This document shows, in pieces, positions 2,722 through 59,400 of a DNA stretch of 64,000 bases (position 1 is its first letter; the number at the start of each line of letters is the position of its first letter). The translations under genes were made by a program, and so were the position numbers. Source of the stretch: Octopus sinensis (Eukaryota); the NCBI RefSeq assembly GCF_006345805.1, contig NC_043014.1:29698001-29762000 (forward strand), in the 5' to 3' direction. The notes under the pieces were generated by a model that did no database searches, was not told the origin of the DNA, and saw nothing but the letters and a program-made list of their open reading frames with translations.

Positions 2722-4516
2722 AAGTGTCGAACTGGCAGAACCATTAGCACACCAGACAAAATGCTTAGTGTCATTTTGTCTAATTTTACATGCTGTGTTC
2801 AAATTTCATCCATTTGCGGGTCGAAAAAATGAGTACCAATTGAACATTACGGTCAATGTAATTGACTAGCCCATCCCACAAAATTTCAGGCTTTGTACAT
2901 ATAGTAGAAAGAATTATTATTGTTATTATTATTATTATTATTATTATTAGAGTGGTGAGCTGGCAGACAAAATGCCTGGCAGCATTTCATCCATCTCTAG
3001 GAACTGGGTTCAAATTCTGTTGAGGTTGACTTTGTTTTTCATCCTTTCAGGGTTGATAAAATGAATACCAGTCAAGCACTGGGATTGATGTAATTGACTG
3101 GCATCCTCCTCCAAAAATTCAGGCCTTGAAAGGATTATTATTGTCCATCCTGAGTTCAGCTGCCGCTGGGGTTGACTTAGCTTTCATCCTTTTGGGGTCG
3201 ATGAAATAAGTTCCAGTTACACATTGCAATCAATGTAATCGACTAGTTCCCTCCTCCAAAATTTCAGGATTTGTGCCTTTAGTAGAAAGGATTATTATTA
3301 TTTAAGACGTCACATAGTATTGAATATCGTGATGTTGATTGAAGATATTGTGTTTACCAGGGGTTTGTTCCGTCTCTCAAGTCAAAACAAGGACCTTAGA
3401 CAGTACTATTATCATCATCATCATCATCATCATCATCATTATTATTATTATTATTATTAATTATTAAGGTGAGCTGGCAGAATTGTTACCACATGGACAA
3501 AATGCTTGGTAGTGTTTTTTTCTGCCTCTTTATGTCTTAAGTTCAATTACTACCAGGGTTGATTTTGTCTTTCATTCTTCAGGCTTGATGAATTAAGTGC
3601 CATTCAAATACTGGGCTTGATGTAATCAATTAGCTGTCTTGCCCAAAATTTCAGGCCTCGTTACCATGCCAGACTAAATGCTCTCTCTTTGTGTTCCAAG
3701 TTCAAATGTTGCTGTGGTTGATTTTGCCTTTTATTCTTCTAGGGTCCATAAAATAAGTATCCATTCAGCACTGGAGTCAATGTAATCAACTTCCGCTCCT
3801 CTCAAAATTGCTGGCTTTGTGATAAAATCGTTGTTAAGATGGCGGACTGGCAGAATTGTTACCATACCGGACAAAATGCTTAGCGCCATATTGTCCGTTT
3901 TTACATTCTGAGTTCAAATGCTATCAAGTTTGACGTTTCTTTTTATTCTTTCAGGGTGGGTGAAATAAATAGCAGTTAGGTGCTTGGGTTGATGTAATCA
4001 ACTAGCTCCCTCCTCTAAAATTTCAGATTTTGTGCCTATAGTAAAGAGGATTATTATTATTATTAAGGTGGTGAGCTGGCAAAATCGTTAGCCTGACAGT
4101 CAAAATGCTTAGTGGCATTTTGTCCATCTTTATGTTCTGAGTTCAAATTCTGCGAAGGTCTCCACTTTGCCTTTCATCCTTTTGGGGTCAAAAAATAAGT
4201 ACCAGTTGAATACTGAGGTTGATATAATTGACTAGCGCCCTTCCCCAAATTTCAGGCCTGTGCCTATTGTAGAAAGAATTTTTATTATTTTTAAAGCGAT
4301 GAGTTGGCAGAATTGTTAGCACACCAAGGAAAATGCTCAGTGGTATTTCATCCGTTTTTACATCCTGAGTTCAAATTCTGCCAGAGTTGTCTTTGCCTTT
4401 CATCCTTTCGGGGTTGATAAAATAAATACCAGATGAGTACTGGGGTCAGTGTAATTGACTAGTCTTCTCCTACCAAATCTTAGGCTTTGTGTCTTTAGTA
4501 GAAAGGATTATTATTA
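2722..4516 (+). mobile_element. Head-to-tail array of about 8 tRNA-derived SINE copies (family A)
   Basis: Recurrent GAGCTGGCAGAA..GTTAGC..AAATGCTTAG..GAGTTCAAATTC..TTTGCCTTTCATCCTTT..GGTCGATAAA..AGTACCAG units separated by (ATT)n/(CAT)n tails; Pol III A/B-box-like head. Confidence 0.9.
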
Positions 4517-13264: not shown

Positions 13265-13830
13265 TACTGAGTGTGGTGAATAAACTGTCGTCTATTTTAC
13301 GCAAAAATGAAAATAACACAGACATCTCATTTTAACAGATATATTTACCAAAATTAGATCAAAATATTTTGAACCATTAAAGAGTAAATTTATTCAATAA
13401 AATCGCCATTGGCTTCAACAACGGTCTCCGGACAACTTTGGAATCTCCTGCAACTCTTCTGGACGGTCTTCTTGTTTAAGTTGGTGAATGCTGCCATAAT
13501 CCTTGTCTTTAGTGCATCTTTGGTGTTACAAGGAGTTTTGTTGGTCTCTTGCTCAACTGTGCCCCACACATAATAATCAAGTGGGTTGCAGTGTGGGGAG
13601 TTAGGTGGCTAGATGTTAGGGGTGATCTGGTCGCAGAAATTGTCTGACAGCCATGACTGGGTTCTCTTGCTTGTGTGGCATGGTGCAGAGTCCTGTTGCC
13701 AGACTTAGGGTCTTCCAGCAGCCACCCTCTTGACCCAGGGCTGCACTACCTCCTTCAGGTACTTGATGTAGGCCTCCATGTTGAGTCTGAGGCTGTGTGG
13801 GAAGATGAATGGAGGCATAATGTCACCATC
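13265..13830 (-). mobile_element. Tc1/mariner DD37D (maT-type) transposon, 3' half, pseudogenised
   Basis: Minus translation DGDIMPPFIFPHSLRLNMEAYIKYLKEVVQPWVKRVAAGRP*VWQQDSAPCHTSKRTQSWLSDNFCDQITPNI*PPNSPHCNPLDYYVWG...GDFIE*. There are 37 residues between the QQD and NPLD aspartates; TIR-like end after TA at about 13265. Confidence 0.88.
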
Positions 13831-14361: not shown

Positions 14362-14735
14362 ATCTTTTACTTGTTCCAGTCATTAAACTACAGCCATTCT
14401 GGGGCATCACCATGAAGAGTTTTAGTTGAAAAAAACCAGCCCTAGTACTTATCTTCTTTTAAGCTTTCTTCTTATTCTATCAATCTCTTTTACCAAACCA
14501 TTACGTTACAGGAATGTGAACAAATCAACACCAGTTGTCAAGTGGTGGTAAGGGACAAACACAAAGACACAAATATATACACACACTCACAAACACACAT
14601 GATGGGCGGCTTCTTTCAGTTTCCTTGTTTCAAATCTATTCCTAGAAGACACTTGCTCAAGGTGCCATGCAGTGGGACTGAACCTAGAATCATGTGGTTG
14701 GGAAGCAAACTTCTTATCACACAGCCATATGCACA
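14362..14735 (-). mobile_element. tRNA-derived SINE family B (about 390 bp), older copy
   Basis: Reverse complement of the GGCTGTGTGGTAAG...CCACATG..GGTTCAGTCCCACTG...CAGCATGGCC..ACTGAAACAAGTAAAAGA consensus. Confidence 0.85.
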
Positions 14736-17700
14736 CTCATTATTTAGAATGCCATAGCTGAAAGTTGTCTTGTTCCTTCTACATGGCATACTTTTTACCA
14801 GGGGAAGACTGAGCTGTCAGTCTATCAGGCACTGCCTGAGGGCCAGGAGTGCTAGGGGCCCACACTCTACTAAAACACACATTCAAAAGAGCCTGGTAAA
14901 CAGTTATGCCCAAGGGCCCTTAATACTCTCAGTCTGCCCCTGCTTTTTACATTTCGGAGACATGTAGAAAGATTTTGTTTATAATTATTGTTAGCAAAGA
15001 TTTTTTTCTTCTTTTTCTTAAAGTAGTGCAGTAGTCTAGATACTAAACACATCTTTAAAGTTTATTCTGGTCTTCTCGACCTATTTCTAATTATGTAATA
15101 TGTACACATTTATGCAACTAACACTAAATAATTTCATTGTCATCTACTTATTCTTTTTCTCCTTACAGTTTATCCTATTAATTGCATTCAACACCAAAAT
15201 ATTTCATTTACTTACGCACTGCCATAGTAATAGTTACCAAACAATTGCACTGTAGGTATTATGTCACAAAATAGACTATCTTGCTCATCTGCATAAAACA
15301 GAGATAGGTTTGAAATAACAGCTGTTATTAAAATAATGTTGTTTTAATCTTGTCAGTCATATTTCAAATTTGTTGTTTAGTTTGGACATCTACATTGTTA
15401 GATAGTTACTTTTAATATTAGAATGTAGTTCATTATTATATATTTTTGAACTGATTAAACATAACATATAAATCCAGAATTGAGATATCTTATTCAGTCA
15501 GCTACTCTCAGAATATTTTTAAAATATATTTCTATGCTAGCAGTTGTTTTCTTAGTGAGTTTGAGTTTCACTGTCCCAAAAAGTATTTTAAATGGGAATG
15601 AAATTGTTATGTATGTATAATGTTACGTAATGTTGGATTCTGACTCAAAGACTCTACCCTTTTTTAAGAAATTACTCTTAGTCTTTATGAAAGTTATATA
15701 GATACATGTCCCCATGCCAGCCTGGAAGGTGGACGTTAAACGGTGGTGATGATGAATATCCATTTCTCCATGCTAGCATGGGTTGTACATGAACATAGAT
15801 AGATGAAGCAGGATCTTACAGCTGGATGCTTTTCATGTCACCACCATTAAGGAATTTCTATTTCACAGATACTCAAAAATGTGAAGCGGCTGACCATAAT
15901 GTCAATCAAGAATGTAAATATCAAATTACAATTTCGCTCATGTGAAGCAGTGGGATGTCAACATGCATGTGTGCACAAACACACACATAAAATCTATATG
16001 TATAAAAAATATATCAAAGTATTGGTGACAGATGTATACTGTAATTAATTGGATTTGGCAGAAGAACAGAAATGGATAAACTCGTTTCATCAACCAACTT
16101 TTTATCGAGACTTACATTTTATGATGCTAGAAAAAGTTGGTATCACTCATCTGGCTATTGAAGTCAAGTCTTAAAACTAAAAACATACAAGATAGAGACA
16201 TAAGACTGGTATGGAAAACACAGACGGATACAGGGCATTAAAAAAAATTTTCTTTTGACCTGAGACAAACACACAGTGGACCTCATTTTTATCTACCAAA
16301 TTCACTTCAAATTTTCATCAACCAAATTACAGCCTATGATAAAGTAGGAGACACTTACCAAAGGTCCCATGCTGTAAGGAGTGAGTCTGAAATTATGTAA
16401 TTGTGAAGCAAACTTCTTAACAAAATAAATAATGATTCTATAGTTAGGCAGTAGGAAAAGAATCTTAATTATTATTCTAGCAACACAAATATGCAAATGG
16501 GTATATGTCAACATGGGGGAAAGTTATGAAATATGAACATTTACTCTTTTATTTCGTTTGTTTAGAAATGTTTTTAATTCTTTTTCTTATTTGCTATTGA
16601 AAATTATAACTAATAGTGCTTTGAGAAAGAGAGAGTTTAAAGATAAAATCTATCTTGGCTCTACATGCAAGATTAAATCACTTTCATTAGTTGTTATTCT
16701 TAAACTTGCTTGAAAATAATACCCTTAATTTTAATATTTATGAAAGACATTTATATACGTTTATGTATGTATGTTTTGGGCTAATTATAACAACAGCAGG
16801 ATCTCCAAGACTAGTGGGAAGAACTTATCCACATACCAGAGACTTGGCTTCCATGTTTTAACAACTGAGTGAACTCTGCTACCGGCACCAAAAGCCAGGA
16901 AGTGGTAGTAAGTTGGTCATTGATTAAGTCTACCATTTAACAGAAATGGTCCCTATGATAGCATGCCATACACAGTTTCCATCTGCCAGATTTCATTCAA
17001 AGATTTGGTTGAGGTAAATTCTATGCACAGTAGAATTGAAACCTGAAACCATGTAGTTGTGAAACATATTTCTTAACCATTCAACCCTGTCTTCACCCAA
17101 GACTTTATATAAAAGACACATCCTTGAAAGTTAAACAAAATTTAGAATAACTTCTTGTTAGCTGTATATAAGATCAAATATCCTGTATAAAATTTAAACT
17201 GGAATTGAAAATGTTAAATCAAATATTGAAAGTTTAGGCTATATAGTGTGTGACTTTGTTGTTTTATTCTTATTCGAGGCTGACACGTTACCCGAGTACT
17301 TGGGTAAAATGCTGGGCAAGACGCTTTCAATTCAGAAGTTAATTTGGTTGTCTCTATGTGTGCATGATAGACATTCCGTCTGTTTCAAATTTCAAGCCAT
17401 TGTATACAAGACCAGTTTTGAATTGACAAAAAAGCTTCCCTTTCTGAACAGTATTTCTGCATTTAAATCTGGTGATTTTGCTATGCACAGCTGTTACATT
17501 GTGATTTTCTGCAAATATTTTCTAAAATATTCCTTCGAATTTTGAAGTTTTTAATTATTTATTTAAATTGAGCATTTATCTGAATTTTTTTTTATTTTGT
17601 CTTTGGAAATTATTGTATAACTGTTTTGTATTGTTTGTTAAAAAAATTTTTCAAAGCAAATAACTTATTTTTCTTGATTATTTCTAAATATACAACTTAC

Positions 17701-20927: not shown

Positions 20928-22360
20928 GTGAGACTTTGGCTGGGCATCTTCATAACTGTCATGGCAGCAACAGTCTGGCTGACTAATTTTTTTCTTTTAC
21001 TTTCTTTCATTTCATTCTTTTCACCATTACTGAAAAGAGAAATAAAAGAAAAACGATGCTGCTAGAATATTTCTTCACATAGACAAATTAGTATTCCAAT
21101 AAATTTTTTGTTCTTTTTGTTACTGTTCATTCATTTTGTTACTGATTTGTTTCTCTCCTTTTCCACAAAGTTAATATTTCCCATATCAGTTTTAATAAAT
21201 ACTATCTTTAAAGTGTTTATTTTGGTATATGTACTCATATTTCTTGAGAATTTAATAATGCTTAAATGGGAAAATCATTAAGAATCTTGATGATTTTTTG
21301 ATAGCTTTTTAAAATGCTTTTAGATGCAGTTTTTTGTTTATGTTATTGTTACTATTTCGTTTTGGTCATTGAGTTGAAATAACTTTATGAATTGCATCGA
21401 TCAGAGTAGTATTTCTTTTCATCTAACTTCTAGAGTTCTTTTAGATTACAGAAAATGGTTTCATCATTAAATTTGTATCATTTTCCTATTGCATGTCACT
21501 TATTCATAAGTTATATTGTTCTTACAGTCATAGTTTTTAACTTGTAAATGTTTTCAAAATCTCATCTTGCTCATTTATGAAGTTCAGAATTATTCTTTGA
21601 GTACAATTAAGCTTAATTTTAATACAATTCAGTCGCTTTTATCATTTATGAAGTATTTAAAAGCTTTGAATTTAGTGTTGAGAAAAACTTTTTTCTTTTT
21701 TTTAAAACAGAAAGTTTGCAAATTTCACTTTTTTCACTTAAGTCTAATAGAATTATTTCCTTTGTGGGGTTGTTGACGTATGTTCTATATGTCTTTTCAA
21801 TGATGATCTCTCCTTGGATCATTTGGGTTTGTAAGAAATAAGAAATAAAAAGTAGAAAATAAGTTAGTTTTAGAGATAGGTAATCAGGAGCTCTACTGTT
21901 TAAATAACCAAATAGGATTTCAAATGCCAACTTAGAATGCTACTTCTATATCATTTGTTGTAAAAAGGCTACCCTGATGTAAATATTTGTATTTGAATAT
22001 GCTGCCTTATCTATGCTAAAAAGATGTTTAGTCGCAGAAACAAAGTTATACTTTCTTTAAAGGTTGAATTTTAATAGAATGCAAGCTCATATTTTTAAGT
22101 CAGCAGCTATGTAAAACTATCCTGTAGAGTTGCTTTAGTGAATTATACTTACAAGGTGTCAATATTAAAAAAACAAACAAACTAAAGTAACTAGGTAGTC
22201 TGTATGTGGATACATTGTGAATAAATTTACAATTAGTATTTTCTACATATAAGTAAAACTTCTTTCAATTGTTTACATTTTGTATTTACATATATTATAG
22301 ACAGAAGGTAGTTTCAATAACTTTCCAAAGTATGATTTTACCAAAAATGTCTACAATATA

Positions 22361-22749
22361 GGCGTAGGAGTGGCTGTGTGGTAAGTAGCTTGCTTACGAA
22401 CCACATGGTTCCGGGTTCAGTCCCACTGCGTGGCACCTTGGGTAACTGTCTTCTACTATAGCCTCGGGCCAACCAAAGCCTTGTGAGTGGATTTAGTAGA
22501 CGGAAACTGAAAGAAGCCCATCGTATATATGTATGTGCGTCTTTGTGTGTCTGTATTTGTCCTCCCAACATCGCTTGACAACCGATGCTGGTGTGTTTAC
22601 GTCCCTGTAACTTAGCGGTACGGCAAAAAAGAGACCGATAGAATAAGTACTAGGCTTACAAAGAATAAGTCCTGGGGTCGATTTGATCGACTAAAGGCGG
22701 TGCTCCAGCATGGCCACAGTCACATGACTGAAACAAGTAAAAGAGTAAA
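22361..22749 (+). mobile_element. SINE family B, young full-length copy
   Basis: GGCGTAGGAGTGGCTGTGTGGTAAGTAGCTTGC...GGTTCAGTCCCACTGCGTGGCACCTTGG...GAAACAAGTAAAAGAG. Confidence 0.93.
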
Positions 22750-23100: not shown

Positions 23101-23118
23101 AAGTTAATATTTTTATCT

Positions 23119-23291
23119 CTTACTCTTACTTGTTTCAGTCATTTGACTGTGGCCATGCTGGAGCACCGCCTTTAGTCGAGCAAATCGACCCCGGGACTTA
23201 TTCTTTGTAAGCCCAGTACTTATTCTATCGGTCTCTTTTGCCGAACCGCTAAGTAACGGGGACGTAAACACACAAACATATACACACACAT

Positions 23292-23345
<54 letters not shown>

Positions 23346-23527
23346 CATATATATACATATATATGACAGGCTTCTTTCAGTTTCTGTCTACCAAATCCAT
23401 TCACAAGGCATTGGTTGGCCCGGGACTATAGCAGAAGACACTTGCCCAAGATGCCACGCAGTGGAACTGAACCCGGAACCATGTGGTTGGTTAGCAAGCT
23501 ACTTACCACACAGCCACTCCTGCGCCT
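23119..23527 (-). mobile_element. SINE family B, young full-length copy (inverted to 22361-22749)
   Basis: Near-exact reverse complement of the upstream copy with an expanded internal (TA)n. Confidence 0.93.
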
Positions 23528-23795
23528 ATATCATATCTGGTATATCATATCCATCTCATGCTTCAGCTAATTTTCCCCATCCAAAGCCTACGCAGCATCA
23601 CAAATATGGAGAAAAAAAGCTTGTTTATTGCCAACAACTGAAACTTGTACTGCTCCTTCATTCTAGTTACTCTGTTTTATTATAACCATTCCTTCCATGA
23701 ATTTGGTTGACTGTCTATTACTCCTGTTGAGCCTTTTCAATAGCTTATGGTGAGTTCCTTTGCAATTAATTACTGCGACAAATACATCACATATA

Positions 23796-24254: not shown

Positions 24255-24645
24255 TGCAGACATGGCTGTGTGGTTCAGGAGCTCACTTTGCATCCATGTA
24301 TTTTGGGTTCAGTCCTATTGCACCTTGGACAAAGTCTTCCACTTTTATAGCCCCAGGCCAACCATTGCCCTTGTGAGTGAATTTAGTTAAAGAAAACTGT
24401 GGTAGGTCATCGTGTGTGTGTGTGTGTGCATGCGTGCCTTTGTCTTTGCTACCTCTTCCAACATTCTTTGGATCAACAAGTGATGATAGTTTCTTTACAT
24501 CCCTGTTATTTAGCACTTTGACAAAAGAGATCAATAAAATAAGTACCAAACTTAACAATGAGTACTGGTGTAGAATTTGACTAAATCCTTTAAGGTGGTG
24601 CCCCATCATAGCTGCAGGCCAATGACTGAAACAAGTAAAAGATAG
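24255..24645 (+). mobile_element. SINE family B, older copy
   Basis: CATGGCTGTGTGGTT...GGTTCAGTCCTATTGCACCTTGG...ACTGAAACAAGTAAAAGA. Confidence 0.85.
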
Positions 24646-26139
24646 AAGAAAATAAATATATTGCTTGATACAAACTAAAATGTAATTTATTCAATTATTT
24701 CTTCAATTTTCAACTGAATGGGGCATTAAAATAAGTAATTTCAATTAGATTTTCAAAATATTCCTTACATTTTTTTCTCTCCACATCCTTTGCTTTTGTT
24801 TTACATACATTTGATATTTATGAAGATTTTGAAAGTTGCATTCAAAAATGTATAATGAACCTTTTTTTTAGGTCATTAATTAACCATTATTTTCACCTGG
24901 GATGTCATTATCATCAGCTTAGTATCCATTTTTACATTTAGGTTATATTTGAAGAGTCAACAATTTATTATCTCTCTGCATCTCAATGTCTTGTACTGTT
25001 TGTGAAATCCAGTATTCTCAACTCTCTCTAACTTCTTTACCCTTTTCCTTCACCATGCATCATCCATTTGTTTTTATATGTCCTTATCCATGCAATTATT
25101 TTTACATTATCTAAGTTTTTCCCTTAATTCATTCCCAAACACCACAATTGAAACACTTGAAACTTTACATCACTGCATAGAATATTTGCAAACTTCATGC
25201 TTTTTTCTCTTTTATTAATTAGCTAAGTAAACTTATTATATAGCTTTTTTGTTTGTCCTCTGTATATAATGATCTTATTTTCCTTCCTTCTTTCCATCTC
25301 ATATACTTTATAACATTTGTGACTGCACTATTTCAACATTCTGTTGCCAGCTGTTAGGTGAGATTCCTGTTCCAGTCACAGCACTATTAGTAAGTCACCT
25401 AGAAACACCACTGTGTTCTAAACCATTGGAATTTTCTTTATACAAATAATTATTTTATTGAGTGGAAACTGGCTCTTACAGAGGCAGCCTTTTTGCATGC
25501 CCTTCTTTCTAATATATAATCTATAACAGAAACATGGGCTTCTCTTTTGTAATTAGAAATCAATTTTATCCTTAGTTCTCACGAAAATGGCTGGCAACTA
25601 GTTGGCTGTTTGGTTTCTAGATCCATGATATAAGTAAATTTTCTAGTTGCTGTGATGAATTAATGGAACAGATGAGAAAATTGGCAAGTTCAGAAAAGGA
25701 AATTTCATTGTAGCTACAGTGCAAGTGGTTACCGAAGACCTTGGTTCTACAATGGTCCAGTTTCTGAGTGGGTTTGCTCACCGAGTGAAGTTTTGTCCTG
25801 TAGAACTGTTATTCTTGAGTAGCTCCAATCAACTCTGCCTTATGACAGCAAATGCTTGGCAGTAACCTATAGGTACACCTTCCTGATTTTATTTTTAATC
25901 TGGTTTAAGGTCTTGTATACTCCTCTGTGTAGTCTTTGTTGTGGTATATGGTTTGCTATCCAGTCAAGGATACTGTGCTACATGTGATTTATTGAAGTGT
26001 TATATATGCTAAATTGGACTTTTAGTTTCCCCCCCCTCTCTTCTTATTTTTAATAAGTTTGATACACAAATATAAGTTTGTGTTTTCCAGTGTTATGTTA
26101 GGAGGAGTGATATTGGTAAGAAAAGAACTGGTAGCTTCT

Positions 26140-27002
26140 AATATATACCTAAAAGTATCCGGAAACATTCTCTGTGGGACAAGCCCGTTTTTAGTTCTGG
26201 CTTCTTCCACTAGAAGCAACCCTCAGACATCAGTCTGCCAACCAGTGCCATCGGGTAGGGTCATACTGCCACATGGTGTGTCTTTGTTTTGCAGTACTTC
26301 TCCCTTGTTCATCAATTTTTGTGATGGCTGAAACAAAGAAGCAGTGTGCCTCCATCGAATTCTGTTTTCTGCTGGGGAAAACAGCAGCTGAAACAGTTGT
26401 CATGCTTCAAACAGCTTACAAGGATGCTGCCATGAGCAAGACACAAGTTTACAAGTGGTTTCCACGCTTTAGGAATCGTCACTTATTTGAAGACCAACCT
26501 CGATCAGGACAACCATCAACCGAACAAATGAAAACATCACAAAAATTCATGAACTGATCTTGAATAACTGTCATGGAATAACTGATGAACTTGTTGATAT
26601 GACTGGTGTGCCCTGGAGCTCCAGCTAAGGAATTTTGAGCAAGGAGTTGCGAATGAAAAGAGTTGCAGTAAAATTTGTGCCTCTCTTGCACATGGAAGAT
26701 CAAAAACAGTCATGACTGAATGCATGTTGTGAACTGAAACAACATTTGAAAATTGATCCAGACCTTTTTTAAGGTTATCACTGGTGACAAAAGCTGGTGC
26801 TATGGAATTTACAGATGTGGTAGAGACAAAGAAAAAAAGGACAGAGGTATTGAAAGGCATCACATTGCAAGAGTTCCAGCACAGCTTCGAATGAGCCTGC
26901 TTCAAATGAGGAATATTTTGAAGATGATAAAAATGTAAACATGTAAAACTAAGTGAATGAAATAATATTGCAAAATTCCAGTTTCTTTTGGGTACCCCTT
27001 CG
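26140..27002 (+). mobile_element. Mariner (DD34D-type) relic with internal deletion
   Basis: From ATG 26324: MAETKKQCASIEFCFLLGKTAAETVVMLQTAYKDAAMSKTQVYKWFPRF..EDQPRSGQPST (mariner HTH), then KRVAVKFVP and KVITGDKSWCYG; 3' TIR TTTCTTTTGGGTACCCCTTCG followed by TA; frameshifted. Confidence 0.9.
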
Positions 27003-30176: not shown

Positions 30177-30224
30177 CTTGTACCATTTCATGCTTACAAA
30201 AAGCAGAAAACCCAAGGGTAAATG
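30177..30224 (+). other. Candidate 48-nt exon of host transcript
   Basis: Very strong acceptor TTTTTTTTTCCTTTTCAG| and donor ATG|GTAAGT. Confidence 0.6.
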
Positions 30225-35294: not shown

Positions 35295-37158
35295 CTTGTT
35301 AAAAATATATATTCTGTAATTACTTTGGCTTTTGATTTTCTTTTAAAATGATTAAAAGTAGCTTAAATATGAAATTTTATAAATCAGTTACTCTATTTTA
35401 ATGGTATAAGATCTTAAGCTATGCACTTTATTACAATCTGTTGTAATAATAATGACTGGACCTGTCAATCTGTCATGCACACATATGCTGGTGCATGTGC
35501 ACACATGTATAAGCTGGTGCATATGCACACAAACACACTATTTCATTGATCTCTGTTCTGTCCATGGTATTGTATCTGCCAGCACAATTCTCTCTCTCTC
35601 TTTGTCAGTGTGTGTACATTGTTAATCATCTTTTAGCAAGGTGGAAAGGTAGTGCTCATGACCCTTTACAAGGTCTTTGATAAGAGAGAAGAAAGGCGTC
35701 ATCAAACAAGAGATGTGACCAGAATGCTTGCAATGGAGTTAACTTCTAGAGGCACTCAAAGCTCAAGTGGTATTGAGTCTACCACCCAAATGTAGGATTT
35801 CAACTCAAATTGTAGTTCTGGAACAAATACAAGCAATCCATCCTGATGTTCTTACAGTTCTACTAATCCATTACTCTGGATTGCTATATTTTTTTTTTAT
35901 TTCATTTTTATTTTTTATTGACTCAAAAGAAGATGAAGGGTGAAGTTAAACTTGATGGCATTTACGCTCAGTGCAAAGAAACAGAACAAATACTGCAAGA
36001 CATTCTATCCAATTCTCTAACAGCTGTACTAATTCAACTAATTCAAAACACAAACACACAGGTACCTTGTAGCATTCATTCTGACCCTTTGCGATCAATA
36101 TTATCTCTCTCTCTCTCTCTAAGAAATTGACTGTGGTTTAGTCTGAAGGTATGTGGAGAAGGAGGCGTTTTTTCAGATTTAGATCCCCAAGAAACATTAT
36201 ATATTATGACTAGTGCTATCTTAAGGTAGGTGCTCTGGCTGTTGCAGCACCACACCCCAGGAGGTATATGGGCCCATTAATATAATTTGATTAAATATCA
36301 GTTGTAGTGAGATGGAGCCTACTTTTTGGGGTACACAGCACCTTGGCTTAGAAGTATGTTTATAATGTTTTGTGTGTGTGTGCACATGCACAATATTATT
36401 CATTTAGTTCATTAAACAATATTTTTGTTACATAAATTTATTTATAACTGTTTGCAGCTGTTGGTAGTAAAATAAAATTGAATGTGGTTCTGCCATTAGT
36501 GCACCTGAGCACCGTATACAATAAGTTCATTATTATATTACACAGCAGTCTGTTTTCTATTCTAATGATTCATCTTGAGATTTATATGATAGTTGTTAAC
36601 TAACTGATTACTCACAAAACTGGGACTGTTCCCACTGACAGTAAATCACATATATACAGTTTTATCAAGTTAAACAGGCATCCAAACTTTAAATTACAGA
36701 ATTGACTAAACAAGTATTCTTTAACCATTGATTTAGGAGAAAAATTTTATAGCTGGTTTAGCCTTTCCATTACTAACTACTGTCTCATGTAGCAACATTT
36801 ACAATTACTTTTCTAGTTGAACTGAGAATAATATTTCTCAGCCAAAGACAACAGCTGTAGAACAGTACACACATAGATAATTTTATATTTTTGAATAAGT
36901 CCAAGACAGTTTTGTGTCATATATGTATGTGTGCTGACGTTTCGAATGACTCCAGCTATAAAAACCTTGCCAAAACTGATCTCACCTGTGCTTGTGCTAC
37001 ATAAAAAACACTTGGTCCACTCTGCTGGGTGGTTGGTATTAGGAAGGGCATCCAGCTATAAAAGCCCCACCAAGACAGACACAAAAGTCTGGTGCAGGTT
37101 CCTCTCAAAGCATCCAATCCATGTCAGCATGGAAAGCAGACATTAAGTGATGATGATG

Positions 37159-49700: not shown

Positions 49701-52599
49701 ATTTGTGCTTTACTTATTCTGATGTTTTCCTGGACTTCTTTTAAAGAACACATAAAACACTGACCAATGGGTTTCTGGACACAGTTGAGTCTATTTCTAT
49801 TTATCCATAGTAAGTTGCTGTAAATGACCAATGGAATGTCAGTTCATGTACTTTAAAAATAAATAAAATATGTGATATCGTAAAAGGAAAAACAAAAATT
49901 CTCACCACTGTTTTTACTGTATTTACAACATTGATAACTACCTATACCTATGGATAGGTATCTTCATTCATTCATTTTAATGTTCACTTTCCCATGTAAG
50001 CATGGGTTAGATGAATATGTTATTGAGGTATTGTTTTATAGGCAGATACCTTTCCTTTTGCTAGCCTTTACTTTTTTCTCTCAAGTAAGGGATCTCTTAT
50101 TCCACATTGCTTCAAATGCACAAAGTGAGTGGACAAGAAGTGCCATCATAACTTTTGAATAAGTGATCACAGAAATAAACAAACACAAGCGCATATGCAC
50201 ACAAACAGTTATACGATGGCTCTTTTCAGTTTCTGTTTACCAAATCCACTCACAAAGCTTTGATCAGCCAGAAGTATTAGCAAAAGTCACTTGCTCAAAG
50301 TGCCTATTACCACATGGTCAGAAAGCAAAATGCTTAGCGGAATTTCATCTCTCCTTATGTTCTAAGTTCAAATTCTGCTGAGGCCAGCTTTCCCTTCCAT
50401 CCTTTTGGGGTTGATAAAATAAGTACTAGTTGAGCAAGGAGTCAATGTAATCAACGTAACTCCTCCAAAATTTCTGGATTTGTGCCAGAATTTGAAACCA
50501 ATATGAAATTTCTTTACCATCAACATTTTAATGTATCTTACTGAATGTCAAACTGATGAAGAACTCTCTACATAACATTCAATAGAATCAACAAATGGTG
50601 CAGTGATTATGCATGCATCGGGTATTTCCTGATTATCTTAGTGTTTGTGGTTCTAGTTGACATTGTCACAAGGAAACTAAAATAGATTCCAGAGAACTAT
50701 AACTACATCAGTCAGTAAAGAACCGAGAAATTATTCAGTTTTGACCTAGGCAAAAACCTGATTTAGGAGCAAGTATAGCTAGACAGCCTATTTGTATGAC
50801 TCCTGCCTGCTCAAAATAAAAATCACTGTGTAAGATGCAACAGGACTTTAATAATCTGTTCTGTTAGCTTTTGATAAAAAATTAAAAACAGAATGTGTGC
50901 CAATAATTTTTGCATCATCATTTAGAAAATTTATTGTGAGAGCTTTATTTATTTGCAACCATATATTTTTTATCTATAAGTAATACACCAAAAATCCAGT
51001 AACAGTTTTGCTTGCATGTCAGTACATTGCCTATTGTGTGCATTTTCCTTAATATGAAATCTTGCCTATTCTTGATAATAATTTAAGATATGCCATTCAA
51101 TAAAGTTTAAGCAAATTTGTTTATTATATTTCATACAGAGTTTATCTATGGGCTTCATTTGTGAGAGATATTTAGGTGGTATGCTGTTTTTCTTCCACTT
51201 ACTCTGTTTATCTAGACCTACTGACCCAATCACAGTTATATCGTTAGTGTGCTTGTGCAGATACAAGAGTATATGTGGAGGTAGTGATGCGAGCAACTAT
51301 AAATGTGAATAAATGAATAGATTAGAGAAGCTAAACTAAACAGATTTATTAGGCTAGACTCTTAAGAAAGCACATAGCACTTAACTGCTTCTTAGCATCG
51401 CAGTAGATTATGTTTAAATGACCTGGTCAAAAGCCACACAAATTACGTGTGGGAGGAGATTTTGATTATAAAATATTGCACATATCAAGAATAAGCAATA
51501 AAAAGTTGAAACTACTTCACAAGCAATGAAGTGTTTATCAATAATAAAGACAATTGAAATAGGTATAATTTATGGAATACGTAGAGATCTAAAAGTTCTC
51601 ATTGTTTGTAGGTACATCAAATGTTAGTGATAGGTGATAGTTTGGTTACAGAAGTTGTATGTTTAAAAAAACACAAAGCAACTGTAGTTTTCCTGTTTTA
51701 AAATAAAACCTTTAGCCTTGATTAGTTAAATCTTTTATACATTATGAATCACTTTTGTAAATTTTAATGGTATTTCCATATGCTTATATCAAATTATTTT
51801 GAATCTGTTTCACCACAACTAAAATTGAGCTGTATGGAAAATTAATCAGTTGAAACCTAAGCTTTCATTCAGTATAAGTCTATTTATTTTTCAATAATCT
51901 GGTTTAGCAAAACAATCTATTATGTTGCATTTTTATCATATAGTTATCTATGACAAAACACTACAAATGTCTAGGTGTGTCTGTGTGGTAAAAAAGCTTG
52001 CTTCCCAACCACATGGTTCTGGGTTCAGCCCCACTGTGTGGCACTTTGAGCATGCATCTTCTACTATAACCTCAGGCCAACCAAAGCCGTATGATTGGAT
52101 GTGCTAGACAGAAACTGAAAGAAGATTGTCATATACACACACACACCCCTGTGTGTTTCTTATGTATGTTTTATTAACAAAGAAAATAACTATCTATATA
52201 ATGTAACATGGACATAAAATGTTGATGATAATGACAATGTATTGTCAAATCTTCAGCTACATGTAACCTTTGTATGTAATACTACTGGATAACTGTGTCT
52301 GTATATATTTGTTTCCCAGTCACCAACCTTCACTTGTTTTCCCATGGCTGGACATATTTGCAAAGAAGACTAGAAATGAATTACACTGTTTGTGCATATA
52401 TCAAGAGAAGGTTGCTGAAGTACACATGTATGCATACATTCAACATCTTTCTTTAAGTCTCTGTCTACCAAATCTCCTCACAAGGCTTTGGTTGGACCTG
52501 TAGAAAACATGCTGAATGTGCCAAGCACTGAGACTGAATCTGGAGCCATGTGGCTGGGAAACATTTTATCCACATAGCCTGTCAGCCATGCTTGAATCA

Positions 52600-53200
52600 T
52601 TAGCCTACCAGACAAAATGCTTAGTGGTATTTCCTCCAGCTTTAGGTATTTCCTCCAGGCGGCGAGCTGGCAGAAACGTTAGCACACCGGGCGAAATGCG
52701 TAGCCGTATTTCATCTGCCATTATATGCTCTGAGTTCAAATTCCGCCGAGGTCAACTTTGTCGTTCATCCTTTCGGGGTCGATAAATTAAGTACCAGTTA
52801 CGCACTGGGGTCGATGTAATTGACTTAATCCGTTTGTCTGTCCTTATTTGTCCCCTCTGTGTTTAGCCCCTTGTGGGTAGTAAAGAAATAGGTATTTCCT
52901 CCAGCTTTATATTCTGAATTCAAGTGTTGCCAAGGTCAACTTTGCTTTCCATCCTTCTAGGATTGATTAAATAAATACCAGTTGAGCAATGTGATTGATG
53001 TAATCGACTAACCTCTCCCCACAAAATCTCAGGCTTAGTGCCTATAGTAGAAAGGGTTGTTATAATAATAATAATAATAAAAGCTATAAACAGAACTGTT
53101 AGTGTGTTGGACAAAATGCTTAGTAGCATTTTGTCTTTGCCTTCCATACTTTCGGGTTCAATGAAATAGTGTACTGGTATCTATGTAATTGATTAACACC
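52600..53200 (+). mobile_element. Nested/tandem family A SINEs (young copy 52658-52890 inside an older copy)
   Basis: Young CpG-intact copy flanked by repeated GGTATTTCCTCCAG(CTTTA). Further family A copies at about 47385-47605(-), 50325-50500(+), 54180-54380(+) and 60105-60290. Confidence 0.88.
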
Positions 53201-54775
53201 CCCAACCCCATCCAAGTTGCTGTCATGATTTTAAACAAATTTTATTATTATTCATTTTAATGTCCACTTTTCTGTGCTTTCATGAATCGGACAGAATTCT
53301 TACAGGGATGGATTGCATTTAGAAGCTATTCATATATATGTGTATTTCAATTGACATAATAACAAATATGTTTCTGTGTTTCTGGAATGAATTAGACCCA
53401 TTACCAAAGGGTCCATTGTGTGTGCGTGCACGCACTACACATGGGGTGAGCTGCTTTCAGTTTCTGTCTACCAAATCCATTCACAAGGTTGGAGCTTTGT
53501 AGAAGACACCTATCCAGGGCTCCATGCAATCAGACTGAATCCAAAACCTTGTGGTTTGGAAGCAAACTTTTTAACCACATGCTTGAGCCTGTGTATGTAT
53601 TTATAATGTTGATAGTGATGGAGTTTATTTTTTTGTATTTAGTTGCTATTCCTTTAACATCATCTTTGCCCAAGAACATAAGAAAAAATAGCCTGCATGT
53701 TATATGACTCCAGCACTGCAAACCATAACCTACTATTACTCTTTATAGTACTTATCACTCAGCAACCAATTTTACAGAATCCATTTTAATTTTCATTTGA
53801 CATCACAATCTCCACCCTGTTTTAAAACTTTTTGCATTGAAGATACCTAAAAAAAGAAAAGTGAATTTAGATTATGCGTAATTCATTACTTAAGTGGTAT
53901 ATTTCTTTAAAAAGTTATCAAAATTAGTGATTTTAAATGAAAAATTAAATGCTTAATTCTTTTAAAAGTTACGATTAAATCTGATTAATAAATTTTTCTT
54001 AAATATAAATTGCAATATTATAATTATTTAACACAAATGATCATGCAAACACCTCTATATACATACAGCTGAAAATGTAGTGAATATTTGGATAGTTTTT
54101 ACAGCTGGCAAATCTGTTTTTGTCGTTAGCAAACTTTATACTTTGTTATCATTTATGGTTATATAAAGTAACTAGTAGGCTGAATTGTCAAAGCCTGAGA
54201 CAAAATGCTTAGTGACATTTTTCCCCCAGCTCTTTATGTTCAGAGTTCAAATCCTCCCAAGGTCAACTTAGCTTTTTATTCATCTGGGTTTGATAAAATA
54301 AAGTACTAGTACTGGGACTGGTAGTATCAACTACTCTCCATCTCCTCAAAATTACTGACCTTCTACCTAAATCAGAAACCATCATTTATGGCCATCCCAG
54401 AAATGTTCAATTACCATATTTTGGAGACAGAAGAGGCATTTAATGATGATCTTTTTTTATCTAATAAATTATATCTGTCTTCCTTTTTCCTTGTCAATTA
54501 CTTTTTTATATGAGCTTTTATATCCAAATTAATAATAAATTAAAAAGAAAATTCCTTAGATTTTTTTTTTCTTTTCTTAATACTTTAAAAGGAAAGGTTC
54601 CCTGATTGAATTAATATCATGTTTTATTTGTTTTATGTAAATAAAAAATATTATCAATGTGATTTGTTGCTTATAAATAAATTAATTATTTTCTACTGCT
54701 TTAAGACTATTCCCAAATGATAGAAACAGAATATTATGCAACTTTATTTTCTATTGTTTCTTTTTCTTTATTTAG

Positions 54776-54839
54776 AAACTACAAAATATTTTATTGGTTT
54801 ATGGCTTACTATGAAATGATTACTATTCATAGCCTACAG
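54776..54839 (+). other. Candidate 64-nt exon just upstream of mir-100
   Basis: Acceptor TTTCTTTTTCTTTATTTAG| and consensus donor CAG|GTAAGT. Confidence 0.6.
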
Positions 54840-55032
54840 GTAAGTATACCTACTTGCTAATATACACCTTGTATTATGTATTTGAAAATCTCAAAAGCAG
54901 CCTTTTAATCTGTATGCAATTAAAATACAATCACCAGAAAGATGAGATGAATGAATACTGGATTCTTGTTTTAACACATTATGTTTGCTATTTCCCAAGG
55001 CTCTACCTCCTTAACTTTTTCCTTTTGTGCGT

Positions 55033-55116
55033 GGCCTGGTTACACAAACCCGTAGCTCTGGACTTGTGTTGAGGTTGGGTCACAAGCTCACGCTTATGGG
55101 TCAGTGTCGCTATGGT
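55033..55116 (+). ncRNA. mir-100: mir-100 family (mir-10/99/100) precursor hairpin; mature 5p 55047-55068, star about 55083-55104
   Basis: 5p arm AACCCGTAGCTCTGGACTTGTG matches canonical miR-100 AACCCGUAGAUCCGAACUUGUG at 19/22 positions with an identical seed. Hand-folding pairs 55042-55068 with 55081-55107 (12-nt loop) and gives a basal stem. The 3p arm CAAGCTCACGCTTATGGGTCAG resembles miR-99/100 star sequences. It lies 1.3 kb upstream of let-7, the conserved cluster order. Confidence 0.93.
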
Positions 55117-56407
55117 AAGTGAAATTAGTAGTCTTGTATTATATTTTATGCGCTGTCAATGACCACACAGCTGCTACTGTCTAATCGGCAGTAAATGTAC
55201 TACTGGATGAGCACTAGAAGGAAAAGAGAAAAAAATAGAGGAAAAGAAACAAGAAAGACATTTCCTGTCCCCAACCACTTACAGTATTGCCTTTACATCA
55301 TACTTAAGGACTTGAGATACACGTAACATTTAGATGGATGACTTTGGAAATGATGATAGAAACTGAGGGAGGGATCTAAAGTGCAACATGAAACAACATG
55401 ATTGAATAATGTATGAGTTATTTAATTTCATCTTAATTCATTTTCACAAATCTAAATTAGATGTTTATTTTCTTTCATGTAATTTTTTATTTATTTTCCC
55501 ATTTGTATCTTGAAAATCATGTTCATTGTTCAAATTTCTAGCCTGTATGTCTTATTTTATTCAATTCCCACTTATTCAATCACAACTTTTAGTAGTTTTT
55601 TATTTCTTTTAATTGTAGCTTTACCAAAACATTATTGCTTTAGATATTTAGTTCCTTATTATTTAAATCTACCAATACTCTAGATATATTTTATTCATTC
55701 TCAGTTATTTTTTTTTTAACTATATTATTGATAATTACATTTAAGATATCAAATAAGTGTTTTGTTGTTGTTGCTGTCATTATCATCATCATTTATCATC
55801 ATCATCATCATCATCATAATCATCATCATTAAAAGAACCAATATTGGGAATATAAGGTGTAAGTAATATTTTAAATAATTTAGAACTTTGGATTAAAAAA
55901 AACAAACTATTAATTGATTTTTGTCATTATTATATGGATTAAAAAATTCATTGAAATATTTCAAAGTTTCAATACTCAGAATACACAATGTTAAAGAAAT
56001 TCATTTTAAATAAATAACATTAAATAATAACCATTATTTATTGATCAATAAACTTTATAAGTGAAATTATTATCGTGTATTTGTTGTATTTTCTTTGTTA
56101 AATATATTTCTATTGTATCTTTCTAATCTCCCTATAAGTAATTGGCAAAAATTAGAGATTCTGTTAAAATACAAGTTTTGAGAATTGTTTCCAAAAATGT
56201 ATTTTGGTAAAATGTGTTGGTTCATGTCAATTATAATTGGCATCATTGTATGATTATACCATTAATTGTCTATGTGCAAATAGATAGCTCATATTTTTCT
56301 TCATCTCCCCTTTCTCTCCTAAATTTTATATAAAGTCAAAAAAATCTCTTTCCCTATTCTTGCATATATGTGAAATACTAAGCTGACAACGAGGAGAAAA
56401 GTTTATG

Positions 56408-56491
56408 ACCCCAGACTGAGGTAGTAGGTTGTATAGTTAAGAAATACACCATTTCAAGGAGAACTGTACAACCTTCTAGCTTTCCCTGGGG
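56408..56491 (+). ncRNA. let-7: let-7 precursor hairpin; mature 5p 56417-56438, star about 56464-56485
   Basis: Exact canonical mature TGAGGTAGTAGGTTGTATAGTT. Star CTGTACAACCTTCTAGCTTTCC; basal CCCCAG/CTGGGG stem; GGAG in the loop (56458-56461); CNNC motif CAAC at 56502-56505, 17 nt after the 3p end. Confidence 0.99.
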
Positions 56492-59400
56492 CATGAATGA
56501 GCAACACTTAAACACATCTATTCTGGCGTTTCAGCAACGCTGAATGCATCATTGTTTATCCGTCTACCAGTTACAATAATTGCAGGCAAATCTCATGCAG
56601 TCCTGTCCTGAATTTAAAATATATAAATAAAATGAGTAGAGGCTGCTTTTGGTTGTGTCAGATTTGTTAGCTGGCATTTAATGAAAAATTTTTTTATATT
56701 TGTCATTTTTTTTATATATTTGCAAAGATGATCATGAATATTATGAAATTGTTTTCAATGTTTGCTTATTTATTTTTTCACATTATTTTTATTTATATTA
56801 TGACACTTAATATCTTTCTGTACATTATAATAGCTATAATTGAAACATTGACTATTTTTCACTGTTTGCTAAGTTACTGCTTTATTAGCTTCTTATTTTA
56901 TTAAATTCAGCTACATTAAAGTTTTAAATTTCTAACTATTACTTCAAAATAGTTTTCGTTTAACAAGAATAAATGTGCTTGGATTATAATTTTAATTTTT
57001 AAGCAATAATCTAATTTAAATTATTTTTTTAATTACAGAATTAAAAATCCCTTTTTATGGAAATTTTACCAACCTCTCCTCCCTAATTTTTCCATGTTAT
57101 TGAAAAAAATTGTATAAATTAAAATTTTTATTTGTAATAATTGCAAAAATTTTTTAATATAAAGAAAACTTTATTCTGTTATCAGTACTATTAATATTTT
57201 TTATTCGAATTTGTTGATAGAAAAAGCATAATTTAAGTTATTGTAAATTTTTCATTTTAGAACATAATTCCTTTGCAAAATTAAGGCAAAAATCCTGGAT
57301 ATTCCATACTAAAATATGTTAAACAAATAAATTACTTTTATCAAAGTAATCTTCAAGTTCATTTTATATTATTTTGGTTCTGCTAAATAATAGATTTGGT
57401 AAATGATGAGATTTATATTTAAAAAAAAAAGCCTATTTATTTGATACCTAGTTTATTTAATAATTGGCTAATTTTCATAGCTGTTTTACTGAAACTAATT
57501 TTAGTTGATTTATTTATTACTGTTTAATTTGTCCAGTTAAGAATTTAAGGAGTAAAAGGTTTATTTTTCATTTTACGTCATAAGTCTCTCATTGATTTTC
57601 AATTCAAAGCAACTATTAGTCTTTTCCAGAGAAAAAAAAAAGATTATATATATATAAACATATATATAGTTCTTTCCAGCAAACCAGGATGTTTCCAGCA
57701 TTGTCTTTTTTTACCTCTTTTGAAGCAAGTGCTACTATTATTCACCAGCTGTTAACCTGGAATGATATGATTTATTGTACTGTTGGTGTCTGCAATTCAA
57801 TTAAAAGTAAGTACAGTTTCTTCATATCCATATTTTTTCTCCTCTCTGATTTAATGTTGTTTTCTATGCTTAAGGGGGTTTCACACATGTACTTTAGCAG
57901 AATTCATTAAATAATTACTCAAAATCAGTATAATCCTCCATTTGATGTCTTTAGTTCTTTTGCCTTTGTGTGAAGATGCTTCATTTACAGTTTATGGTTC
58001 CTATATTCTCATAGATTCTTTTATAACTATTGCCACATGTTTTGTGAAAAAAATAGACCATTTAGTTTGGGAATTAGATATTGAATTACTATCCTTTCAA
58101 TATTAAAAATTTCTTTGGAACTTTGTTTATTTCATAATGAACATTGAAAGAATGTGGTAGAACTTTGTATATTGCAACATATTGTATGATTTGCATATCC
58201 TTTAACTTTCCTGCAATTGATAAATTATATATTCATGTATGTTAGAATGATGGTGTGTGTGTGCATGCATGCATGCAGATGTATGGCTTAGTAGTTAGGG
58301 TGTTGCACTCATGATTATAAGATTGTGCTGTTTTGATTTGTGGACAAAGCAACACATGTTCTTGAGCAAAGTACTTCATTTCACATTGCTCCAGTCCACT
58401 CAGCTGGTGAAAATGGGTAATCCTGCAACAGACCAGCATCATGTCTGGCAGGTGGAGAGTATACACAGAATCTGGAAAACCAGCCTTATAAGCCCATGGC
58501 TTTTTGATATATATATGAGAGAAAGAGAAGGAGAAAGAAAAAGAAATAAATAGTTTAAATATAAAGTTTTTTGGTGATTGTTGTTACACATTGCGTACTT
58601 TTTTAATGCCTCAGAAGTTGACTCTAGAAAACACTAAACTATTCTGTTTCCTAAAGCATACTTTGTTAAGTATATTTGATACATTTTGTATGGAAAAATT
58701 CTAAGTGTACGTGTATTTATTTTAAATATGTGAGAAAGAGAAAAGTTATATAATAAATGCAATAAAAAGATATAAAGGCAACCTTTAGTTATTGTTTAGT
58801 AATTCCTCATCAGTGTCCATATAGTGGTAGGTGATCAGATAAAGCATTCAGTTGCTGTTTCTTGTTATCATTTTTATCCTAAAATTCCATGTGGAACCAT
58901 TTCAAAGATGATAGGATTTTTTCTTCTTTGTGGTCATGGTGGGGGAGTATTACTGCCGCAATAACTTCTGTCGCAAGACTTCTCGACAACAATTTGCTTT
59001 GTTGAATGGTTAGCTCCTTCCATTTTCACTTTTAATAATTATGTGCCATAGAGAAACTTCAACAAACTGGAATGGGGATTATATGTTTGAAATATTACAT
59101 AAAACAAATTTTGATAATACTAATAAAGCCTGTCACTATAAACCACAAAATAGACAAAAATTTAAGTAAGGGATCTTTTCAGGTACAATAATAAATGTCA
59201 ACATAACTAGGAAATGTTCAGTGTGAAATAATTATCTTAAAATTGCAAATGTGATGAGAATTTGAATTGTAATGGTTTTTCAGAAGTTTAAAAAGCATAC
59301 TGAATGTAAATTAATAGTTTTTATTTAGAAGTGACTAATTTTTAGAAGAAATCTTTATTGGCAATATAAAAGTAAGCATTAGAAACATCTATTTCAGACA

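Follow-up and report, generated by a model that had tools for sequence, protein, structure and literature searches.

The region examined here is a 64,000-nucleotide stretch of Octopus sinensis DNA (NCBI RefSeq assembly GCF_006345805.1, contig NC_043014.1, positions 29,698,001 to 29,762,000), referred to below as the window; coordinates are counted from its first letter. On its plus strand lie a mir-100 microRNA (miRNA) hairpin and, 1.3 kb 3' of it, a let-7 hairpin. These two are among the oldest co-transcribed animal miRNA pairs, and their mature levels often differ sharply, for reasons only partly understood. A strong 5' splice-site motif coincides with the base of the mir-100 hairpin, and candidate acceptors and a candidate upstream exon lie close by. 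The features that carry this observation are the following (a slash marks a splice junction).

55034 to 55116, plus strand: primary hairpin of mir-100 (MIR-10 family), including a lower stem of about 13 positions, assigned from Rfam, fold and loop geometry
55047 to 55068, plus strand: mature miR-100-5p, AACCCGUAGCUCUGGACUUGUG, with the canonical seed and three substitutions, at positions 10, 13 and 15
55083 to 55104, plus strand: approximate miR-100-3p arm, placed from the fold and the 2-nt overhang rule
55112 to 55120, plus strand: ATG/GTAAGT, a strong 5' splice-site motif with its junction at 55114/55115, overlapping the last three base pairs of the basal stem
56411 to 56489, plus strand: let-7 hairpin, which clears the gathering score of Rfam RF00027 (53.5) with 61 bits

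The identity of the upstream hairpin was assessed by its Rfam score, seed, fold and arm pairing. The Rfam mir-10 model (RF00104) matches 55040-55110 over its full length (model positions 1-74) at 43.7 bits (E 2.5e-8), slightly short of the gathering score of 47.5; for calibration, genuine let-7-linked mir-100 hairpins from other animals were found to score 34-74.5 bits, several of them below the gathering score. The ACCCGUA seed is present at positions 2-8 of the 5p arm, which reads AACCCGTAG... from 55047. The predicted folding energy is -30.6 kcal/mol (z -2.26), compared with -29 to -45 kcal/mol for mir-100 hairpins of other animals, and the internal-loop pattern is that of the termite and other mir-100 hairpins (approximately 25 animal hairpins compared). 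Relative to the canonical AACCCGUAGAUCCGAACUUGUG, the mature 5p sequence has three mismatches, A to C at position 10, C to U at position 13 and A to G at position 15. Substitution of this kind is unusual, miR-100 being among the most highly conserved miRNAs of animals, and the canonical miR-100-5p was invariant across all genuine mir-100 loci retrieved from metagenomes. The 3p arm compensates the three changes, with C-G becoming U-A, one A-U becoming C-G and the other A-U becoming G-U, which favours a maintained, functional hairpin over a decayed copy. A decayed pseudo-miRNA, considered on account of the three mature substitutions and the sub-threshold Rfam score, was rejected: the opposite arm compensates the changes, and scores of this size are also found among genuine invertebrate mir-100 hairpins. 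The seed, the loop geometry, the compensated arms and a canonical let-7 downstream on the same strand together make this, as judged from sequence and predicted fold, a credible mir-100. Small-RNA reads of octopus Mir-10-P2_5p have been reported (PMC9699675), in a paper that also describes Iso-Seq, FLAM-seq and shotgun RNA data covering 18 tissues of Octopus vulgaris; the supplements of that paper contain neither precursor sequences nor a miR-100 tissue profile, and the exact mature string of the window was not found in the literature searched.

The downstream hairpin is a plain case. Its mature let-7 (56417-56438) is identical to the canonical sequence, with 0 mismatches, and it folds at -39 kcal/mol (z -5.86). 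At least nine other animal mir-100 loci also have let-7 downstream on the same strand, and the region represents the mir-100 to let-7 part of the ancient bilaterian let-7 cluster. For mir-125, the third ancestral member (seed CCCUGAG), the plus strand of the window contains no CCCTGAG, no match within 5 mismatches and no Rfam match; it may lie more than 7.5 kb downstream or be unlinked. On the opposite strand of let-7 (56408-56491, minus strand), Rfam mir-3596 matches at 69.6 bits, below its gathering score of 96. This match is a mirror image of let-7 and not a separate gene, since the same antisense match occurs at the let-7 loci of other animals. Between the two hairpins lies an (ATC)n-type microsatellite (55775-55830), on which weak small nucleolar RNA-like Rfam matches on the minus strand (SNORD74, sR5; E ~1) are probably artefacts.

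To place the splice signals on a common scale, all GT and AG dinucleotides on both strands of the window (128 kb) were scored with a generic metazoan 5' and 3' splice-site matrix; the chance figures given for splice motifs here and below are post hoc. The donor at 55115 scores 9.68 bits, ranks 27 of 6,881 GT sites and has 7 contiguous nucleotides complementary to U1 small nuclear RNA (snRNA). Minimum free energy (MFE) folds of both 55020-55130 and 55034-55116 pair G55034 with U55116, C55035 with G55115 and C55036 with G55114. The donor GT (55115-55116) is thus paired in the basal stem, which places a splice-site sequence inside the primary miRNA (pri-miRNA) hairpin. The predicted cost of opening this site is ~4.4 kcal/mol, and the hairpin fold is predicted to stay intact when G55115-U55116 is swapped for other dinucleotides. 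By the 2-nt overhang rule for Drosha cuts, the 3' cut is predicted near 55104, and the donor GT would then lie 11-12 nt below it, at the basal junction. First-order Markov simulations give an expectation of approximately 13 donors as strong as this one per 64 kb per strand, which corresponds to a ~0.25% chance of finding one within the 12-nt zone at the base of a given hairpin. A donor motif at the mir-100 basal junction is strong and unlikely by chance.

A second, stronger donor with its own candidate acceptor lies a short way upstream.

54744 to 54775, plus strand: pyrimidine-rich tract that runs up to TTTAG/, a strong candidate for the 3' splice site of exon A
54776 to 54839, plus strand: candidate 64-nt exon A of the host or primary transcript, with a strong acceptor and a perfect donor, 195 nt upstream of mir-100
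54837 to 54847, plus strand: CAG/GTAAGTAT, donor junction 54839/54840, a perfect 11-nt complement to the 5' end of U1 snRNA

The acceptor at 54775 (TTTCTATTGTTTCTTTTTCTTTATTTAG/A) scores 9.62 bits and ranks 70 of the 7,335 AGs on both strands, and the donor at 54840 scores 12.85 bits and ranks 2 of 6,881, with 0.55 donors of that strength expected per 64 kb and strand by Markov simulation. The 5' end of U1 snRNA is universal in sequence, and CAGGTAAGTAT at this donor is its only contiguous 11-nt complement in the 128 kb scored; the next best is 8 nt. Acceptor-donor pairs in which both sites reach at least 9.5 bits and lie 30-300 nt apart number seven on the plus strand and one on the minus strand (1.67 expected, Markov). 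The seven are as follows.

Plus strand, candidate exons bounded by such pairs: 3268-3468, 3743-3955, 3955-4070, 14380-14547, 30177-30224, 36124-36225 and 54776-54839

Composition points the same way. In nearly all 2-kb bins T exceeds A on the plus strand, which carries 122 pyrimidine runs of at least 10 nt (63 on the minus strand) and 91 AATAAA (127 on the minus strand). Together with the exon-like pairs, these asymmetries fit, without proving, a long intron-rich plus-strand transcript that contains both miRNAs. The motifs at 54775 and 54840 suggest that a real exon probably ends at 54839, and the pairing of the stronger donor with a good acceptor makes a spliced plus-strand host transcript plausible.

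The unusual extent of U1 complementarity at 54837 can also be read in another way, namely that the 5' splice-site motifs at 54840 and 55115, and perhaps those at 55859 and 57807, bind the U1 small nuclear ribonucleoprotein (snRNP) without splicing. The bound U1 would then keep the AT-rich pri-miRNA from being cleaved and polyadenylated prematurely, an established mechanism known as telescripting, or would stimulate Microprocessor or transcription, and would protect the production of let-7 downstream of mir-100. Five AATAAA occur on the plus strand within 54700-57900, two of them between the miRNAs (56009, 56047) and three after let-7 (56626, 56968, 57326), and the GTAAGT motifs in 54000-58000 number four on the plus strand and one on the minus strand. 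In addition, the 11 bp of pairing exceed the splicing optimum, and pairing of U1 to a 5' splice site over more than 8 bp is reported usually to suppress splicing (PMC10492213). However, the plus strand has more T than A overall, which confounds the AATAAA asymmetry between the strands, and the good acceptor of exon A argues for real splicing. We consider binding without splicing to be distinctly unlikely.

The junction 54839/54840 is open to a further interpretation, since CAG/GTAAGT also fits the recursive-site motif YAG/GTAAGT. In that case, 54839/54840 would be a recursive splice site within a very long intron, and the donor at 55115 would define a transient recursive exon, 54840-55114, containing mir-100; recursive exons are an established mechanism. 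The two motif halves are juxtaposed, the acceptor score at this point is 7.63 bits, the pair 54840-55114 passes thresholds of 7 and 9.5 bits, and a gene-poor window with sense-strand skew fits a long intron. The pyrimidine tract before 54839 is mediocre, however, and with a strong acceptor 64 nt upstream the donor is more simply accounted for as closing an ordinary exon. This leaves the recursive site with only a slim outside chance.

An exon that ends at 55114 requires an acceptor, and two candidates lie within reach of the hairpin, accompanied by a branch-like sequence.

54969 to 54999, plus strand: branch-like TTTTAAC, T-rich tract and CCCAAG/, a moderate candidate acceptor; TTTTAAC lies 24 nt upstream of the junction
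55008 to 55027, plus strand: branch-like TCCTTAAC at 55008-55015 (fits YNYURAY, branch A at 55014), followed by a 12-nt pyrimidine tract
55053 to 55055, plus strand: TAG, internal candidate acceptor, the first AG after the branch-like sequence and pyrimidine tract, within mature miR-100-5p and base-paired in the hairpin stem

The acceptor at 54999 scores 7.11 bits (rank 230 of 7,335) and, joined to the donor at 55115, would give a 115-nt exon B (55000-55114) in which the whole hairpin is exonic. Downstream of it, the pyrimidine tract TTTTTCCTTTTG occupies 55016-55027, while the uninterrupted pyrimidine run as computed spans 55015-55026. The window has six plus-strand copies and one minus-strand copy of a YNYTRAY motif with a pyrimidine run of at least 10 nt no more than 6 nt behind it, so that the chance of such a composite within 40-60 nt of a given hairpin is ~0.4-0.6%. 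From 55000 there is no AG until the TAG at 55053-55055. As a signal in its own right, this AG-exclusion zone was rejected, a 55-nt gap being ordinary here (such gaps account for 4.5% of all gaps and for 20% of positions). With 1.38 bits, the internal AG at 55055 ranks 1729 of 7,335, its score being low because the 20 nt that precede it are the purine-containing lower stem, and it is paired in the MFE fold with an opening cost of ~3-3.6 kcal/mol. Predicted accessibility was tried as a means of ranking the sites and rejected as evidence, the opening energies being small (~3-4.5 kcal/mol) and non-discriminating.

These signals had been described in a first-pass annotation of the same DNA, and as observations they were borne out. 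The branch-like sequence, the pyrimidine tract and the delayed TAG inside the mature miR-100 could all be read where they had been placed, as could the consensus donor with its GT paired in the basal stem and the CCCAAG acceptor that would make the hairpin exonic; the linkage of a mir-100 hairpin to let-7 was upheld by Rfam, seed, fold and the canonical let-7 downstream. The model built on them fared less evenly. It proposed that the branch point at 55014 and the tract direct splicing to the AG at 55055, so that a 59-nt exon (55056-55114) ending at donor 55114 lacks the 5p arm; pre-mir-100 would be destroyed, let-7 would remain in an intron, and the choice would be regulated by tissue or stage. 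The arithmetic of this exon is correct, but its acceptor is poor, lacks an adjacent pyrimidine tract and lies in the stem. Splicing at 55114 alone, or from the acceptor at 54999, would leave the hairpin fold in place, and only the internal AG, the weakest of the sites, would destroy pre-mir-100.

Several points nevertheless speak for the 59-nt exon. The first AG follows the rare branch and pyrimidine-tract composite by 41 nt, and a candidate exon at 57726-57806 would keep let-7 intronic. The low acceptor score is not decisive, because the known cases in which a 3' splice site lies inside a hairpin (miR-34b, miR-205, miR-133a-2) also use acceptors that predictors score at zero, and a 44-nt mini-exon of the human MIR222HG transcript is a close precedent. 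Set against these are the rank and base pairing of the AG, the purine-containing basal stem before it and the better acceptor at 54999, 56 nt upstream. There is no purine-rich enhancer inside the 59-nt exon, the purine tract lying downstream of the donor. Furthermore, for coding-gene exons that overlap miRNAs in this way, inclusion was unchanged on depletion of Drosha or SF3B1, and Microprocessor-induced premature termination was proposed instead (Pianigiani 2018, PMC6097652). An exon of 55000-55114 that contains the whole hairpin is most likely the better candidate of the two, and the 59-nt exon as originally proposed appears very unlikely.

The rarity of the motifs at the hairpin, and the absence from 54000-58200 of any donor above 7.4 bits other than 54840 and 55115, suggest more than coincidence. 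Our tentative best explanation is a sequence-divergent but bona fide mir-100 in a spliced non-coding host, whose basal junction is a functional 5' splice site and which would be a candidate 5' splice-site-overlapping miRNA (SO-miRNA), most plausibly by way of a facultative exon 55000-55114. In such a host, a long spliced non-coding plus-strand primary transcript would carry both mir-100 and let-7. U1 snRNP would require 55112-55120 to be single-stranded, and Microprocessor would require 55034-55036 to be paired with 55114-55116 as the basal junction, so that on each nascent RNA the first machine to engage would set the outcome. Cropping would yield miR-100 and cut the transcript; splicing would retain the hairpin within an exon of the spliced long non-coding RNA (lncRNA), where later cropping would still be possible. 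let-7, 1.3 kb downstream, would be cropped independently in either case. The analysis shows what the hairpin is, where the motifs lie and how strong they are, how they pair and how rare they are; from this arrangement we infer the use of the sites, the competition between the two machineries and any effect on miR-100:let-7 ratios.

How far the arrangement extends to other animals was assessed with a metagenome scan using AACCCGTAGNTCNGNACTTGTG, which returned 41 loci. Apart from bacterial chance matches, these belong to distant animals, putatively termites, ants, corals and vertebrates among others; the C/U/G miR-100 variant of the window occurs in none of the 41. DNA-pattern scans of genome and viral contig collections for relatives gave no match, an exact look-up of 10 open reading frames of the window in a public assembly collection found none, and a homology search with the 79-amino-acid frame spanning 54833-55069 returned no match at E <= 10. 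A donor-like TAG/GTATGT was seen within vertebrate miR-100-3p at two vertebrate-like loci (L004, L005), where it is simply 3p arm sequence. At another locus, L039, a CAG/GTAAGA lies 83 nt upstream of mir-100, which suggests that an exon ends close to mir-100 there too.

The main rival to a functional splice site at the hairpin base is that the signals are coincidental and unused. mir-100 and let-7 would then be ordinary intronic miRNAs, for example within the intron after exon A, or would lie in an unspliced pri-miRNA, and 54999, 55055 and 55115 would be idle. The sequence is AT- and T-rich, and alongside the 122 pyrimidine runs the plus strand holds 387 YNYTRAY motifs and, per 64 kb, approximately 13-17 donors of equal strength; nor is the AG-free zone out of the ordinary, and the probabilities quoted are post hoc. 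A number of results weigh directly against our preferred explanation. A strong donor at the hairpin base was found in 0 of approximately 25 distinct mir-100 loci from other animals, so the feature is at most lineage-specific, and, as the vertebrate 3p arm illustrates, chance alone can place a donor-like motif within a hairpin. Overall, donors of the strength of 55115 are not enriched (17 on the plus strand, 13 expected by Markov simulation). The acceptor at 54999, an AAG, is of moderate strength only. Predicted accessibility fails to distinguish the sites, with the lowest value falling on the strongest donor (54840). Immediately upstream, let-7 lacks a strong acceptor: none exceeds 3 bits in the 270 nt before it, those between donor 55115 and let-7 are only moderate (55284 at 7.4 bits, 55618 at 7.3 bits), and motifs comparable to those at mir-100 are absent from the flanks of let-7. 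Finally, the scoring matrix is a generic one, built from textbook frequencies, and is not species-trained. On the other hand, the donor at the hairpin base (~0.25%) and the branch and pyrimidine-tract composite (~0.5%) are both present, beside the best U1 site of the window. On this balance we judge idle signals to be unlikely, while taking them more seriously than the other alternatives considered here.

A functional basal-junction splice site would not be without precedent. SO-miRNAs are an established class that includes 5' sites at hairpin bases, such as 5' SO miR-1204/PVT1 and miR-638, as well as 3' SO miR-34b, for which antagonism between Microprocessor and spliceosome was demonstrated (Mattioli et al. 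2013, PMC3794580). The competition at such miRNAs on which the first-pass annotation had drawn is documented (PMC3794580, PMC7566567). The likeness to the window is close, in that a splice site lies at the base or in the stem of a pri-miRNA hairpin, competition is possible and some of the hosts are non-coding. In contrast, the class is defined by spliced expressed sequence tags or transcripts, whereas the window mir-100 is recognised by motif; human mir-100 is not among the SO-miRNAs listed (PMC3794580).

The nearest counterpart is MIR222HG, in which a 44-nt mini-exon partly overlaps pri-miR-222 and splicing is set against cropping in the miR-222/221 cluster (Sun et al. 2020, PMC7566567). What the two share is an exon of very small size, 44 nt in MIR222HG and 59 or 115 nt as proposed here, that overlaps one hairpin of a two-miRNA lncRNA cluster. 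The human case, however, was established by RNA sequencing, minigenes and depletion of SRSF1 and Drosha in human cells, while the candidate exon in the window is read from motifs and has no obvious purine-rich enhancer inside.

Within the let-7 cluster itself, splicing has also been described. In Hofstenia miamia a constitutive 834-nt intron between let-7 and mir-125-a was verified, introns were predicted in 63 of 116 LET-7/MIR-100/MIR-125 clusters from 43 species, and splicing-based uncoupling was proposed explicitly (bioRxiv 10.1101/2024.12.01.626237); the supplements of that preprint contain no per-species intron predictions for octopus. The cluster is the same ancient one, and in both animals splice sites, candidate ones in the window, are found beside or in between the hairpins. 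The Hofstenia intron spares both hairpins, whereas the donor in the window overlaps the mir-100 stem. For a Hofstenia-like intron, which would reach from the mir-100 donor to an acceptor directly at let-7, the donor at 55115 is strong, and the 270 nt upstream of let-7 hold no good acceptor.

Other routes are known by which members of this group are processed differently. In C. elegans, SL1 trans-splicing upstream of let-7 promotes processing of pri-let-7 (Mondol et al. 2015, PMC4509930; bioRxiv 10.1101/400077). There, as proposed here, an acceptor close to one of the hairpins of the group reshapes the primary transcript and alters Drosha processing; the worm event is trans-splicing and promoting, whereas that in the window would be cis-splicing at mir-100 and possibly antagonistic. 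In Drosophila, ADAR edits the pri-miR-100 basal stem of pri-let-7-C at position -6 and shifts miR-100 relative to let-7 and miR-125 (Chawla and Sokol 2014, PMC4005697). This is editing and not splicing, and it offers an alternative way of uncoupling that is relevant to a cephalopod with heavy adenosine-to-inosine editing. LIN-28 is a further known route to differences between miR-100 and let-7 levels.

If the basal junction doubles as a 5' splice site, it would be a simple physical way to set miR-100 output per transcript, and it would supply an invertebrate example, in the ancestral let-7 cluster, of an SO-miRNA class so far defined in mammals. A fully regulated form can also be envisaged, in which the mir-100 hairpin is captured in a facultative mini-exon (donor 55114, acceptor 55055 or 54999) and a regulated choice between splicing and Microprocessor cropping tunes miR-100 apart from let-7 across tissues or stages, as a lineage-specific and probably cephalopod trait. 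We give this fuller version very little credence; if true, splicing would in this lineage have uncoupled the oldest animal miRNA from let-7. The value of the proposal is limited, because the SO class, the near-identical MIR222HG case and the idea of uncoupling within the cluster are already published or preprinted, and the sites here are candidates read from motifs.

Two further features flank the region and bear on how a host transcript might continue.

55216 to 55249, plus strand: purine-rich tract (AGAAGGAAAAGAGAAAAAAA..AGAGGAAAAGAAA), ~100 nt 3' of donor 55115
57726 to 57806, plus strand: weak candidate downstream exon, with acceptor TTTTGAAG/ at 57725 and donor AAA/GTAAGT at 57807

The purine-rich tract could be a splicing enhancer, or it could be one arm of an inverted repeat with 54754-54773. 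The repeat is 20 nt long, with 18 of 20 positions complementary, and joins 54754-54773, in the pyrimidine tract of the exon A acceptor, to the purine-rich 55233-55252. It brackets exon A and the hairpin, and could be a chance match between low-complexity tracts. The downstream exon, with an acceptor of 9.38 bits and a donor of 7.35 bits, is of a kind that is common by chance; it would leave let-7 intronic.

The remainder of the window contains repeats. SINE-like (short interspersed nuclear element-like) copies, recognised as recurring translated motifs, lie on both strands at approximately 14446-14754, 22341-22649, 23116-23682, 24286-24690, 50163-50378, 52267-52782 and 53391-53704. They appear to resemble the abundant octopus SINE; ARAGORN found no transfer RNA gene. 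Mariner/Mos1-type transposase remnants are present at two places: the one at 13393-13608 (minus strand) looks by eye like a transposase C-terminus and has no Pfam match, and the one at 26195-26554 (plus strand) matches Pfam HTH_48 with an E value of 2.3e-10.

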